DNA of 62,953 nucleotides, the filler included, from Hausera hauseri (taxonomy: Eukaryota): NCBI GenBank assembly GCA_046269625.1. It is 10 parts of 10 records of this genome, joined end to end, with 100 filler letters (N's around TTAATTAATTAA, not from the genome) between each part and the next. Parts side by side here need not be neighbours in the genome. Positions count along the whole stretch, not along the records: positions 49,271 to 54,128 come from JBJURY010413256.1; 9 more parts are not named here. One strand, 5' to 3'. This document shows, one piece after another, positions 6,634-54,128 of this stretch; within the stretch, counting starts at the first letter, position 1, and every line of letters starts with the position of its first letter. The translations under genes and the position numbers were made by a program. The notes below the pieces were generated by a model that was not told where the DNA came from, did not search any database, and saw only the letters and a program-made list of their open reading frames with translations.

Positions 6634-7668
6634 TTGTCAGATAATAGAAAAAATAATAACGACGAAAGAAATGTGTCGCCTCGTCGTTCAGTAACTTTTA
6701 ATGAACAAACTAAATCAGCTTTTACGGGTTTGTTAATGGCAAAACCCGTAGAAGGATCTCATCAACTAACACCTGAACTGCCAACCAATAATACTATCCT
6801 GGAAAAACCCTTCATAACTAGGAAACAGTTGGATCAGGCAGAACGAAAAGTACCAGATATCCAAAGAAATACACTTCCATACATGTTATGGCCAGAAACT
6901 AAAGAAATTAAAGATTTACTTTCAACCTTTGTAGCAATAGGAAAAACTAATGAACAAGAAAAAGAATCAAAAATTAACCGAATAAGAATAGAGAATATCG
7001 AAGGAGATCTGATAATTGAATTAGAAGATGTAAAAAAGGAAAAATAAAAATGCTATGAAAACCTTAGACAAATACTCTGTGGAAAACTTGTAGTTGGAAT
7101 AGAATTGCCATGGTTGTTTAAAGAAATACAATTGAAGGAAACCGATATTTATGGTACGTTTAGTGTAGATCAGAATTTTAACTTACCAGATGATCAATGG
7201 AAAATAGAAAATACATTGTTACAACAATTGAATAATTTACGACAAGAGTACCAGATTAAACTTAACCGTCAAGGATCTGCCTACTTCATTTTTCCCAGTA
7301 GACCTTTATATAAGAATGATGGATATCCCCAACGTGAAATGACATGTAATACTACTTTAATTCCAGAGGCAGTATTGCAGCGCATGGACATAAGTATCGT
7401 TCAGAAATGGGATAAACTACTTGCATACAAGAAAACTGACAGAATAGAGTTCGCGGATATAGCTGAACAAGGATCGATTTGTATGGGAGGCATTGATAAA
7501 ATCTACCGTAAAAGGACTGGTATTCAAATAAAAAGAAAAGATCCACCGTGTGCTATAATCACCAATCAAGGAGAAGCCAGATTGCAAATTAATAATAGAA
7601 CAGCAATAATCTCCAAGAAAACTAAGATACTCCCTAACTATCCTTATGAAGGAGATTATCAGATTTAA
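6634..7668 (+). pseudogene. Accessory coding region of element A, unknown function
   Basis: ORFs 6634-7047 and 7105-7668 are in the same frame as 7672-8475 and separated only by stop codons; no motif recognised. Confidence 0.5.
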
Positions 7669-49270: not shown

Positions 49271-49386
49271 GCCAACCAGAAAGAAGCGCAAAGAGTTTCT
49301 ACCAATCAGCGCAGACCACGGTCCCATTTATACGCGTGTTGCTCGGTAGTGTGATCTAACTGAAATGGCGCGCACAAAGCAGACAG
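49271..49386 (+). promoter_or_regulatory. Histone H3-like promoter and first 7 codons (MARTKQT)
   Basis: CCAAT at 49302-49306 (CCAAC variant 30 bp upstream), TTTATA at 49327-49332, ATG GCG CGC ACA AAG CAG ACA G at 49365-49386 = H3 N-terminus plus the first base of the Ala codon. Confidence 0.65.
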
Positions 49387-50588
49387 AAATTGACTCCTTG
49401 ACTGTTTTTGCTGAGGAGGCTCTGGAAGATGGACGCGTCCATAAACCTGGAACCGTCTCTATAACCTTGTCAGGCGCTCAGGCCACCAAAGTGACATACA
49501 AAGACATGGCAGCTTTCCTGCTAGGACCAGTAGGTATAACTCCAAGCGGACTGGCGACGCTATACCGGTTCGAAAATCCAAATAAATGGTACATTACCCT
49601 GACACAAGCTGCGCACATCCGCCTGTACGAACAACTCCACGGCCAGAACCACCAATGGCATAGCCATAACCTCAACGTACAGCTCGAGCATTACGAAAAA
49701 GAAAGGACAAAAGGAACCCTACACTGGCTACCACCCGGCCTAAAAGCCCACATTGCCAAACGAGTTGCTGCCCAAATCTCCGGAGACACTGACGCTGAGG
49801 TCACCCCTGTCAACAACTACAGCGACAAGTGGAATTTTACTTGTCGTCCAACAAAAGAGATACCGTATAACTTTTACCTGCGAATCCCTGACACTCCAGA
49901 CAAAGAATTTAAAATATCAATCACAATACCAGGCAGACGAACCCCATGTAATATATGCGGCACGACCGAACACTGGACAAACCAATGTCCACACAAAACA
50001 AGACGTCAACCTGCTGGCCCAGCTACAACACAGCCAGAGACAGCCACGAATATCCCAAGGACATCCAGACACACAACAACCCAATCAGCAATGACCAGCC
50101 AGGAAGACGCGGAAAACACTGAACGATCGGACTTCAAAGACAACCCACAAGGTCTCCTCCTAGAAAGCCTTAATAAAGAAAACAATTTGGACATTTGCCC
50201 AATTACACCATCGTTGCAGATCAGCAGTGAAAGTGAAGACGAAGACCCACCAAGAACCAGAGACACAAACTTGGATAGATTTACAGAGGTGCTCTCCAAG
50301 AAGGCGAAGAGAGCCCGTCAACGTTCTGCACAACGACAAGCCCCTGCCACGAAGTGCAAAGCGGTGTCCAACAGAACAATATCACCAAGCCCGTCACGAC
50401 GCCCCTCAAACGGAACCAGGTCACAGTCCAGACCGACACGGAACCTACCCAGTGAACAGCCAACGACTACAGAGCCAAGCACGATTGACATGGAAGCAAT
50501 AATAAACTTTGATCCAGATACGTACGACCAACCAATCCAGCCAAGCAAGCCATGGGACAACCAGATGGACCAAGAAGAACCCGAGTAA
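49365..50588 (+). CDS. L1/Tx1-type ORF1 protein (RRM-like N-terminal region, CCHC knuckle, disordered tail)
   Basis: Intact 407-aa ORF upstream of an APE-RT ORF2; CNICGTTEHWTNQC zinc knuckle; low-complexity S/T/P/R tail. Confidence 0.85.
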   Translation: MARTKQTEIDSLTVFAEEALEDGRVHKPGTVSITLSGAQATKVTYKDMAAFLLGPVGITPSGLATLYRFENPNKWYITLTQAAHIRLYEQLHGQNHQWHSHNLNVQLEHYEKERTKGTLHWLPPGLKAHIAKRVAAQISGDTDAEVTPVNNYSDKWNFTCRPTKEIPYNFYLRIPDTPDKEFKISITIPGRRTPCNICGTTEHWTNQCPHKTRRQPAGPATTQPETATNIPRTSRHTTTQSAMTSQEDAENTERSDFKDNPQGLLLESLNKENNLDICPITPSLQISSESEDEDPPRTRDTNLDRFTEVLSKKAKRARQRSAQRQAPATKCKAVSNRTISPSPSRRPSNGTRSQSRPTRNLPSEQPTTTEPSTIDMEAIINFDPDTYDQPIQPSKPWDNQMDQEEPE

Positions 50589-53500
50589 CAACGAGCACCG
50601 AACGTAGCCAAAAAAAAGGATTTCAATAAGGTCAGATATTTTAAAAATTATTTGAACAATGTAAAGTAGTACTACTATAAGAACACTGTAGAAATGTTTT
50701 ACTAAATTATACTAGAATGTATGCCTCCCATTTAAATTTACCAACCACATGCCTCACCCGCTATCTGTAATTACGCTAAATATCCATGGTCTCCGGAAAA
50801 AATTAGCGGAGATCATTTCGCTGCTCCGAAGCCAAACACCCGATTTTATCCTACTCCAAGAAACACATATCACCACCCAATATGAAGCAGACAAAATAAC
50901 GACACAGTTAGGACTCAGGCACGGCATTTTTGCCCGAGGAACCCAATACACAGGAGTAGCCACACTCCAAACATCGGACAATTGGGAAATAACAGAACAT
51001 GAAACAGACACAGAAGGCAGAATAGCTATTGCTAAAATCCAAAACCCAGCAGATACAAAAGAGACCATCACTTTGGCAAACATTTACGCACCAGCACAAT
51101 ATAAGGAAAAACCCCTCTTTTATGATAAACTATTTCAAATTCTAGATCAACGATATAAAAACACTACCATAATAATCGGAGGAGATTTCAACTGCGTCCT
51201 ATCGCCGCTGGATGTCAGATGTGGAACGGTCAACAGGACACCATATGGGGATGAAATGCCACACACAATAACCTTACAGGCAATCCTGGACGAACATGAT
51301 TTGGTTGATACCTATAGGAAAACAAATCCGACAGGTACAGAGACAACCTTCAGCGACCCAAGCCGCACGAACAGAACTTCTCGACTAGATAAGATATACG
51401 CTCCAAAAAGCTTCACCGTAACAAAAATCCAACACCTACAACATACATTACGGTACACGGACCACAAAGCCGTTCAGGCACACTTCCATACATGCCCTAC
51501 ACATACACATTCAAAAACACCCCACTGGAAATTCAACAATAGTCTATTAACCAACCAGCGCTACACGACACAAATAGGAACATTAATACAAGCATACGTG
51601 CAAGACATACCCGAAGACAACGTGTCGGATTACTGGGAACTCCTTAAACGAACAATAGTCGATAGAACACAATCAATAGCTACAAAAATAAACCGGGAAT
51701 ACAAAAAGATGGAAAACATCATACTGTCTGCAATCAAAGAAACAGAACAAAACGACCGATCTTCGCCACATTTGCACACACTACGCGAAGAATTAGACCA
51801 ACACCGGAAAAAGAGATACCAAGGCGCACAGATAAGAACGAGACTGCCATCTACACCACACGAAACCCCAAACAGCGAGTATTTAGCACTAGAACAGAAC
51901 ATACACAGAAACAGACAGATACATCGCATAATAGACGCAGAAAACCAGACCCAATCCACGAATGATAACATCCTCACGGCATTCCAACAGTTCTACACAC
52001 AACTGTACACAGGACAACCGACACAACCGCTGGCACAAAGCCTTTTCTACGAACACACCAAACAGATCAACAATCAAGACAAAGCTATCTTAGACCAACC
52101 GATCACGACACAAGACCTTACGTCTGCCCTACACTCCTTCCAAAACGGAAAAACACCTGGACCAGACGGTCTATCAAAAGAATTTTACACTTACTTCTTC
52201 GTCCTATTAGGCCCCCTGTTCCTCAAAATGGTAGAGGAAATCGTGGAAAAACAGGAACTTCCGACCACACTACGACAATCATATATCACTTTAATACCCA
52301 AGAAAGACACCGACAGACAACGCATGGAAAACTACCGCCCTATCTCTCTACTAAATGTAGATTATAAAATTATTGCGAAGACCCTAGCCAATAAACTGAG
52401 ACCCTTCCTCCACTCACTAATACATGAAGATCAAACTTGTAGCATACCACACAGAAGCATTACACAACACACACACCTTATCCGAGATATAATTGAATAT
52501 GCAGAACAGAAGAATACTCCAGCCGCGATACTGTCACTAGACCAGCAAAAGGCATTCGACAGGGTCTCCCACGAATATCTACATCAACTCCTGGACAGAA
52601 GCAACTTCGGTGAATATTTTAAAACTTGGATAAAAATATTATATAAAGCACCCGAAAGCCGCCTCCTCATCAATAACAACCTCAGCGAGCCTATCCGACT
52701 AACACGATCCGTGAGACAAGGATGCCCCCTATCACCCCTTCTATACATCCTGACATTAGAACCGGTACTAGAAGCTATAAGGCAAGATACCAACATCAAA
52801 GGCTTTCACATACCAGGGGCAGGAGAACGGAAACTTACTGCCTATGCCGATGACACAACGCTGTACCCAAGCAACCTCAAATCCATACGTAACATCTTAG
52901 AAATTTTCATAGATTTCGGAACAATCAGTGGATCTAAACTTAACGTACAGAAGTCTACGATCATGGGCATCGGCCAATGGCAGAACAAAACGGAATACCC
53001 CCTGACACTAAGACGAGTGCAAGAAATGAAGGTATACGGAATCGAATATTACCCAACCAACAAAAGGAACAGGCACCGGCGCTGGAAACCAATAATGACC
53101 CGAAGTGAAGACATCTTAAATAGATACAAACACAAGACATTAACCATTTTTGGCAGAAGCGTGGTGGTAAACACGTATATACTCCCTCTGTTGTTTTACA
53201 AGGCCAACGTATACTCGCCACCAAAAGAAATAGTAAGGAAAATAAACCAAATGGTCAGACGGTTTATTTTCAAAAGCTCGATCAGCAACATACAACATAA
53301 AACCCTAATTCAGAAGAAAGGCGCAGGAGGGATTGGACTACTTGACATTGCAGCAAAAATAACAACACTACGAATTAAGTACGTAGGGGAAATTATAAAA
53401 CACTCACCAAGACACCCCCTAGCCCATTACTATTTGGGCATGAGAATAACCAAATGGCACAAACCTAGCAATACAATACCACACCACTACGGACCACCAC

Positions 53501-54128
53501 CACCCTTCTACCAGGAATGCATTACTGCCATTCACCAGAACGAAAACCACCTGCACGCAACAACCAATCAAATTTATACTCACATCGTGCAAACACAAGC
53601 ACCCTCATTACTCTTCCGGATCAAGGTAGGCTACAAATATTTCATTACAGACCACACCCAAATCTTTGAGAACCTGCACAACTTACCAGTCACACAGGCA
53701 ACTAAAGAAATCACGTTCCGATTAATTTACAACATGACCCCCATTAAATACCGGGCTAGACCATATGCTCAGAAGACAACCTTTTGCAAACTATGCCCCG
53801 AGAAGCACCAGGAGACAGAGGAGCACCTCTTCTATTCCTGCGCCGTGATGACCCCGACCATACGACATATGGAAAATTTGTTCTCCAAATACACACCCAA
53901 TTGTCCAATGCATAAAGCCATAATGATAAATATCATTCCGACCACAGAAACCGCTGCATATAAGTACATGTTGACAATTCTGGCCCAATATAGACACCTC
54001 GCATGGACGGCTCGGAACAGCGCAGTTTTCAAAAACGGGCGCTATACCCCGAAGACATTCCTGACAATATTTTGTCAACGAATTACCTATATTCCAGAAC
54101 CAAAGTACACCAAACCCGCCGTCAGTAA
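49387..54128 (+). mobile_element. Apparently intact Tx1/L1-clade non-LTR retrotransposon
   Basis: Two uninterrupted ORFs with a 160-bp spacer; 3' end not visible. Confidence 0.92.
50749..54128 (+). CDS. L1/Tx1-type ORF2: AP endonuclease, reverse transcriptase, C-terminal CCHC; runs into the contig gap
   Basis: TLNIHGL, LLQETH, NIYAP, GGDFN, SRLDKIY, TDHKAV, WKFNNSLL; KTPGPDGL, NYRPISLLNVDYKI, LDQQKAFDRV, SVRQGCPLSPLLY, AYADD; CKLC...ETEEHLFYSC. No internal stops. Confidence 0.96.

Follow-up and report, generated by a model that had tools for sequence, protein, structure and literature searches.

A LINE joined in frame to the start codon of a multicopy histone H3 gene in Hausera hauseri

When a retrotransposon protein opens with the first residues of a histone, is this a single accident of insertion, or the way in which a whole lineage makes its living? 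The question is raised by a long interspersed nuclear element (LINE), here called H3-LINE, at positions 49271-54128 of a window of 62,953 nucleotides (nt) of joined DNA parts from Hausera hauseri (record JBJURY010413256.1 of assembly GCA_046269625.1; the window is the whole stretch, and all coordinates are positions in it). A preliminary description of this DNA had read the element as a Tx1-type LINE inserted in a histone H3 gene, using the promoter and start codon of that gene, and had proposed a histone-specific retrotransposon. For the tests of junction and depth, Logan contigs from one public run were compared with the piece, and 95% of the sampled words of the piece were present in that run. 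These tests established a genuine insertion into an H3 gene. Whether this reflects a lineage adapted to H3 genes is a matter of probability, which we weigh below against the alternatives.

The interrupted H3 gene and the start of ORF1

A contig with a depth of about 1700 is identical to positions 49271-49386 except for a single difference (49348 A>G), so that the H3 flank differs from the main H3 repeat at 1 of 116 bases. The first bin of the piece (49271-49432) had a summed depth of 1509, compared with 13.8 across the element. Past 49386 the high-depth contig carries on for 255 more bases, starting with CTCGCAAGTCAACCGGAGGCAAAGCTCCAC; read together with the G at 49386, these give ten codons, GCT CGC AAG TCA ACC GGA GGC AAA GCT CCA, for ARKSTGGKAP, which are codons 8-17 of H3. 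The identity of the flank is therefore not a chance resemblance, and the same genome has uninterrupted H3 genes that share its promoter, its leader and its 22 coding bases. The CCAAT, the CCAAC about 30 bp earlier and the TTTATA were all located as the preliminary description had claimed (Table 1), and its reading of an insertion in an H3 gene, which proves to be genuine and multicopy, was confirmed by the contigs of the run, since 49271-49386 matches the H3 promoter, codons 1-7 and the following G.

The element side of the junction was equally clear. A contig covering 49357-52178 showed no differences and a depth of 13.8, and it reached 30 nt (k-1) into H3 at equal depth; further exact contig pieces over the LINE body had depths of 12-16. 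Every read-supported copy of the 5' end is thus joined to H3 at this point. The 31-mers over the junction between H3 and LINE occur in the reads, and the insertion is a true one, which follows the 22nd base of the coding sequence of H3; G at 49386, the base at the join, is compatible with both the H3 and the element side. The depth ratio of H3 contig to element is about 120, which we took as the copy number of the H3 family. The host is one member of this family of about 120 copies, apparently of the replication type, and the element lies in it in sense orientation. The high copy number and the CCAAT and TATA boxes fit that type; a 3' stem-loop and the surroundings of the cluster would fall outside the piece. 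An Rfam search of the piece found no ribozyme, no histone stem-loop, no small nuclear RNA (snRNA) and no other family.

The first open reading frame (ORF1) encodes MARTKQT followed directly by EIDSLTVFAEEAL (EIDSLTVF...), and no base separates the H3 part from ORF1 codon 2. A strong, Kozak-like context, ACTGAAATGG, surrounds the H3 ATG, with A at -3 and G at +4. The next ATG, at 49429, is out of frame and opens an ORF of only 11 codons, and the next in-frame Met is residue 48 (49506), within the first RRM-like domain, as the preliminary description had placed it. ORF1 is intact and in frame from the H3 ATG, with no stop and no other usable ATG ahead of the domain. We then compared this start with those of related proteins in an alignment (A2) of 30 of the 132 ORF1 relatives. 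The start Met of at least ten relatives falls in the alignment column of T7 of the H3-fused ORF1, and the residues after that Met are E, G, D, N or S and then I (MEIP, MGIP, MDIP, MNIK and others), compared with T-E-I-D here. Because of this alignment, the element part of the H3-inserted copy can be placed as beginning at the ancestral codon 2 of ORF1. Judged from the alignment and the reading frame, which bear out the earlier claim of an in-frame fusion, this is a LINE copy without a 5' untranslated region (UTR), promoter or ATG of its own, in which the H3 gene has replaced, in frame, the start codon and all that preceded it. The ORF1 protein (ORF1p), predicted as (M)ARTKQT-ORF1p, has no other visible source than the promoter, cap-proximal leader and start codon of H3.

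Two of the ORF1 relatives, P0147 and P0131, have other short leaders before the conserved E-I-P: METPLNMQSNV stands before EIP in the former, and MCA before MEIP in the latter. These are formally analogous to MARTKQT before EID.

Table 1. Features of the H3-LINE piece, in window positions (aa, amino acids)
Feature	Position	Strand	Basis or remark
5' flank: histone H3 promoter and short leader	49271-49364	+	Read directly; on contig of depth ~1500-1700
CCAAC	49272	+	Upstream of ATG
CCAAT	49302-49306	+	Upstream of ATG
TTTATA	49327-49332	+	Upstream of ATG
First 22 bases of H3 coding sequence (MARTKQT and G of codon 8), now start of ORF1	49365-49386	+	
ORF1, 407 aa: H3 heptapeptide and ORF1p from ancestral codon 2	49365-50588	+	ORF call, alignment A2
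LINE body, cut off by the end of the piece in the last ORF2 residues	49387-54128	+	Contigs and ORFs
Two tandem RRM-like domains, about residues 30-110 and 115-187 of ORF1	49452-49925	+	AlphaFold model, Foldseek
CCHC zinc knuckle CNICGTTEHWTNQC, residues 195-208 of ORF1	49947-49988	+	Pattern C-x2-C-x4-H-x4-C; column conserved in relatives
T/S/P/E/R-rich C-terminal half of ORF1p	50022-50585	+	Composition; not alignable among relatives
Spacer between ORF1 and ORF2	50589-50748	+	Sequence and ORFs
ORF2, 1126 aa, open at end of piece	50749-54128	+	Pfam, motif, relatives
Endonuclease, residues 8-239 of ORF2	50770-51465	+	Pfam Exo_endo_phos, 2.1e-14; apurinic-type
Reverse transcriptase, residues 516-750 of ORF2	52294-52998	+	Pfam RVT_1, 1.8e-37
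Zinc motif CKLCPEKHQETEEHLFYSC	53785-53841	+	Motif; Pfam zf-RVT 0.0023, below cut-off

The encoded proteins and their relatives

No Pfam family was matched in ORF1, and its RRM-like domains were recognized by structure prediction. An AlphaFold model of residues 1-240, built on A2, had a mean pLDDT (predicted local distance difference test) of 90.7. About 15 residues at the N-terminus lack secondary structure in the model, the first ten having a confidence of 68; the pLDDT drops past residue 210 and stays low up to residue 240. The two domains have a beta-alpha-beta arrangement, and Foldseek matched them to the tandem RRM proteins IMP3 RRM12, HuR and Sxl (E 2.5e-5 to 8e-4), in agreement with the RRM-like region that had been noted before. 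The predicted ORF1p, a flexible tail followed by two RRM-like domains and a CCHC knuckle, thus has the make-up expected of the Tx1 clade, and so does ORF2, with its N-terminal apurinic-type endonuclease, its reverse transcriptase and a C-terminal Cys/His motif. Language-model features of the same 240 residues (49365-50084) lie near clusters that include vertebrate ZCCHC3 (score 0.91); as a lead only, this hints that host genes of the ZCCHC3 type and this type of ORF1 share an origin.

The closest ORF2 relatives, of 1122-1125 aa, cover 99% of ORF2 of H3-LINE, which extends about 13 residues past their ends. Since it is already beyond these ends, ORF2 is essentially complete, and the 3'UTR and tail would lie beyond the piece. 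Both ORFs are intact, as had been stated, and it is this intactness that suggests a young element. The closest named ORF2 relative is a hypothetical protein of the land snail Bradybaena similaris (P0002; 1125 aa, 46% identity). Two observations concern the depth of coverage in this region. About 37 bases of ORF2, within 53140-53180, match a contig with a depth of about 1733 (the H3 contig having 1702) with one difference, 53175 G>C; the source may be a related LINE present in high copy number, or part of a LINE within a high-copy repeat. Over the final 60 bases a single contig was matched, which differs at six positions (54065-54094) and has a depth of 9.5; the contigs listed for the run do not include the exact 3' end of the piece.

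A pattern scan of metagenome contigs revealed 80 loci with an ORF2 identity of 26-32%. A scan of prokaryote genome bins gave 55 further loci (25-31%), without histone motifs, which are evidently animal DNA in contaminated metagenome-assembled genomes (MAGs); a scan of viral contigs found no relatives. Rfam detected U2 on the same strand in 13 loci (L002, L005, L006, L009, L010, L012, L018, L019, L025, L027, L060, L083 and L095). U5 was found in three loci and U1 in four, likewise on the strand of the LINE, while two loci have 5S, both on the opposite strand. In five loci (L006, L010, L012, L018 and L025) the element directly adjoins the first 38-51 nt of U2. The 5'UTR of these five loci is only about 20-85 nt long, and the first long ORF has its own ATG, at a distance of 72-126 nt from U2 +1. 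In four of the five that first ORF is ORF1; L018 has ORF2 only. At the 3' junction of L010, A(n) is followed by ATCTGTTCTTATCAG. Keno elements are described as LINEs of the Tx1 clade that are specific for U2 snRNA genes (Kojima and Fujiwara, 2004, as cited in PMC4494074 and PMC6136364), and the published Keno site lies 37 nt into U2, with the 3' target TCTGTTCTTATCAGTTTAAT (PMC6136364). By sequence comparison, the insertion point of the U2-abutting relatives matches this site. Together with the short 5'UTRs, these U2 sites suggest that promoterless co-transcription with the target, discussed in PMC4494074, is the habit of the wider group.

A profile made from A2 also detected ORF1 of several U2-flanked loci (E 1e-6 to 1e-3). 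In a tree of ORF2, H3-LINE groups with P0002-P0022 in a clade of 21 that has full support and adjoins a small clade (P0023-P0030 and L015) and then the snRNA-resident clades. The preliminary assignment to the Tx1 type thus gains support, since the distant ORF2 relatives are Keno-like and sit in U2, U1, U5 and 5S genes. From its neighbours in the tree, H3-LINE is probably Tx1-type and related to Keno; membership of the clade is supported but falls short of proof, since the tree (106 rows, 'quick' method) was built without an outgroup and without named references from L1 or Tx1.

The MAGs that yielded distant relatives, two of them labelled as bivalve or SUP05-type symbionts, deserve mention in their own right. 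The loci L091-L134 (CAXXMW01 contigs, for example contig_18, from the MAG 'uncultured Arenicella sp.') form head-to-tail arrays of a distant relative with 25% ORF2 identity, spaced by about 5.3-6.6 kb, and Rfam found no RNA gene in L101; they look like animal DNA binned as a bacterium, with a tandem target. The bins of L082, L083, L084 and L095, named Metamycoplasmataceae, Anaerolineae, Sedimenticola and Taylorina symbiont, contain eukaryotic U1, U2 and 5S arrays with LINEs, a case of public MAGs contaminated with host DNA.

A possible H3-adapted lineage or a single event

We lean towards the view that H3-LINE shows how a lineage adapted to H3 genes normally operates, much as its Keno relatives are adapted to U2. 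In such a lineage, transcription by RNA polymerase II would begin at the H3 promoter and run into the LINE, and ribosomes would start at the H3 ATG to produce ORF1p. The ORF2 protein would use its endonuclease to nick a further H3 gene close to this position and its reverse transcriptase to copy the RNA by target-primed reverse transcription, and the co-transcribed H3 leader could pair the end of the cDNA with the target and so rebuild the in-frame 5' junction. For R2, R1 and Keno-type elements, the case has been made that co-transcribed target sequence guides the 5' junction (PMC4494074). The fusion in frame would then be a necessity, not luck, because the strong ATG 22 nt upstream permits ORF1p in that frame only. 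Since only an in-frame, stop-free element yields ORF1p, a lineage resident in H3 would be selected to look like this copy. In favour of an H3-adapted lineage are the intact state of both ORFs, the target specificity of the relatives, a flank that is genuine and multicopy H3, a junction carried by the reads, the open frame from the H3 ATG, the alignment of the relatives' start Met with T7, and a place in the ORF2 tree beside the snRNA-resident clades.

A number of points weigh on the other side. Only one type of junction was found, at a depth of 13.8 (other single contigs have about 4-16), which looks like one copy. In the run, there was no second or diverged copy of the 5' part of the element at 85% identity or more, and no alternative 5' flank among its contigs. 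None of the 132 ORF1 relatives, which come from 1.84 billion representatives (50% level), begins with ARTKQ or another histone N-terminus, and all have their own Met; against a set of 5.8 billion proteins (90% clustering level), ORF1 gave one match, P0001, with 42% identity and again its own Met. The comparison of insertion sites covered the distant relatives, at 25-32% ORF2 identity. With the TTTATA only 38 nt ahead of the ATG, the leader would have to be very short. The piece stops at 54128 within ORF2, so that the 3' junction, tail and target-site duplication lie beyond it; the H3 sequence expected 3' of the inserted element, from about codon 8, is ARKSTGGKAPRK, and among 6 of 71 loose ends listed there was no contig end at the 3' end of the piece. 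Finally, the finding was drawn from a very large scan, which selects for oddities and so favours rare coincidences. With one junction only, at single-copy-like depth, site specificity for H3 is not demonstrated. Hence, of the histone-specific retrotransposon without a 5'UTR that the preliminary description had proposed, the missing 5'UTR stands, while specificity of a family does not follow from one junction.

Among the 80 loci from the metagenome contigs there was no H3 motif, and one locus with an intact H2A gene. In this locus, L002 (JACSEG010000556.1), the H2A gene (202-579) precedes a Keno-like element by about 1 kb, and a U2 gene (6717-6863) comes after the element. Histone and U2 genes less than 7 kb apart provide a setting where a U2-resident LINE could meet histone genes.

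The strongest competitor of an H3-adapted lineage is a one-off event, in which a Tx1-type element that had a short 5'UTR and an ATG of its own, and that was non-specific or normally aimed elsewhere, inserted a single time into H3, was truncated at its 5' end just behind the ATG and fell in frame by chance, without adaptation to H3. We regard this as possible, although doubtful. It is what the single junction, the single-copy-like depth, the relatives' own start Met and the selective nature of the scan would lead one to expect, and since the 5'UTRs of the group are short, a near-full-length truncation beside the ATG is less improbable than in LINEs with long UTRs. However, several independent coincidences are required. 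A random insertion would need to hit about 50 kb of H3 coding DNA, in sense orientation, near the 5' end of the gene, with truncation at ORF1 codon 2 and in the right frame, all jointly. Moreover, a one-off event leaves aside that the relatives are habitually specific for multicopy genes, and that both ORFs are intact.

Going further than adaptation to H3 genes, H3-LINE could belong to a specialised lineage that is the first with a multicopy protein-coding target, and whose ORF1p carries ARTKQT as a mimic of the H3 tail. Judging from sequence, we consider this combined proposal unlikely. After removal of Met, ORF1p would expose a free ARTKQT N-terminus, which might be read or modified by the readers and writers of H3R2, T3 and K4, or be used for chaperoning or import of the histone type; such a tail could link the particle to S phase, to chromatin or to the histone locus. 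Expression of the LINE in S phase or in the early embryo, and an H3K4 mimic tail, as suggested in the preliminary description, would be pure inference.

Alternatively, an old LINE insertion could have been kept by the host as an RRM/CCHC protein driven by the H3 promoter, with or without the reverse transcriptase and no longer transposing. The apparently single copy with intact ORFs under a host promoter would fit such a co-opted gene, and the resemblance of ORF1 to clusters holding ZCCHC3, with two RNA-binding domains and a CCHC motif, is a lead in that direction. Nevertheless, we consider co-option very unlikely, since both ORFs, the spacer and the architecture of endonuclease, reverse transcriptase and zinc motif are intact as in an active element, the near-identity of the flank to the main H3 repeat argues for a recent event, and no orthologue was found, the best ORF1 match having 42% identity. 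That there is no true genomic insertion at all is scarcely credible: the piece is a short contig beginning inside a high-copy repeat, and run and assembly may rest on the same data, but an assembly chimera is ruled out by junction 31-mers at 13.8, equal to the depth of 2.8 kb of element, and a template-switch retrocopy from LINE RNA to H3 mRNA, which would begin at the H3 cap site, is ruled out by about 85 nt of untranscribed promoter (CCAAT, TATA) that match the genomic H3 repeat.

Comparison with known systems

The searchable reviews by Kojima give U2 genes, microsatellites and other transposons as targets of the Tx1 clade, and histones are unmentioned there. In searchable papers, site-specific LINEs are described for rRNA, snRNA and tRNA genes, microsatellites, telomeric repeats and other transposons, none of which is translated. 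We found no LINE that targets histone genes, or that so uses a host start codon, in the open full-text literature, Repbase Reports and subscription journals being outside the search; a prior description in Repbase Reports or in non-open journals may exist.

What the arrangement means depends on which reading holds. A one-off insertion would be a mere curiosity, with one disrupted copy among about 120 H3 genes. If H3-LINE is resident in H3 genes, the strategy of a safe haven in a multicopy gene would be extended to a protein-coding family, the expression of a LINE would be tied to a tightly cell-cycle-regulated histone promoter, and we would have a natural example of precise in-frame targeting by a LINE with an apurinic-type endonuclease. 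The H3 heptapeptide on an RNA-binding ORF1p is also a directly testable candidate for a histone mimic.

Among known systems, Keno is the closest. Both combine endonuclease, reverse transcriptase and zinc motif in ORF2 and have an ORF1 of distantly related type; both are inserted in sense orientation, tens of bases into a multicopy gene transcribed by polymerase II, with little or no 5'UTR and a presumed dependence on the promoter of the target. However, the target of H3-LINE is the protein-coding H3 gene and not the position about 37 nt into U2, its ORF2 is only 25-32% identical to that of the U2-resident loci and lies in a separate clade, and it has been seen as one copy only. The Keno-like loci, moreover, retain an ATG 72-126 nt past U2 +1, while H3-LINE has none that belongs to the element. 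By its target and its ORF2 clade, H3-LINE is therefore not Keno, and by eye we saw no likeness between the H3 site and the Keno site in U2.

With R2 and R1 of the rRNA genes, H3-LINE would share transcription from the target promoter and the help of co-transcribed target sequence in making a precise junction (PMC4494074). In contrast, the endonuclease of R2 is restriction-like, there is only one ORF, and the 5' end forms a self-cleaving ribozyme; no ribozyme was found in the H3-LINE piece. Unlike R2 and R1, H3-LINE could make use of a host start codon, because its target is translated. Chimeras of the MAST2-SVA type (PMC4494074) likewise join a host promoter and host 5' sequence to a retroelement, but their host part is transduced and moves with the element. 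The H3 part here is the insertion site itself and not a transduced segment, since it includes untranscribed promoter and matches the resident H3 repeat. Collectively, by analogy with these systems, H3-LINE would work like Keno, R1 and R2, as a promoterless resident of a multicopy gene; its novelty, conditional on specificity for H3, would lie in a target that lends the element a start codon as well as a promoter.
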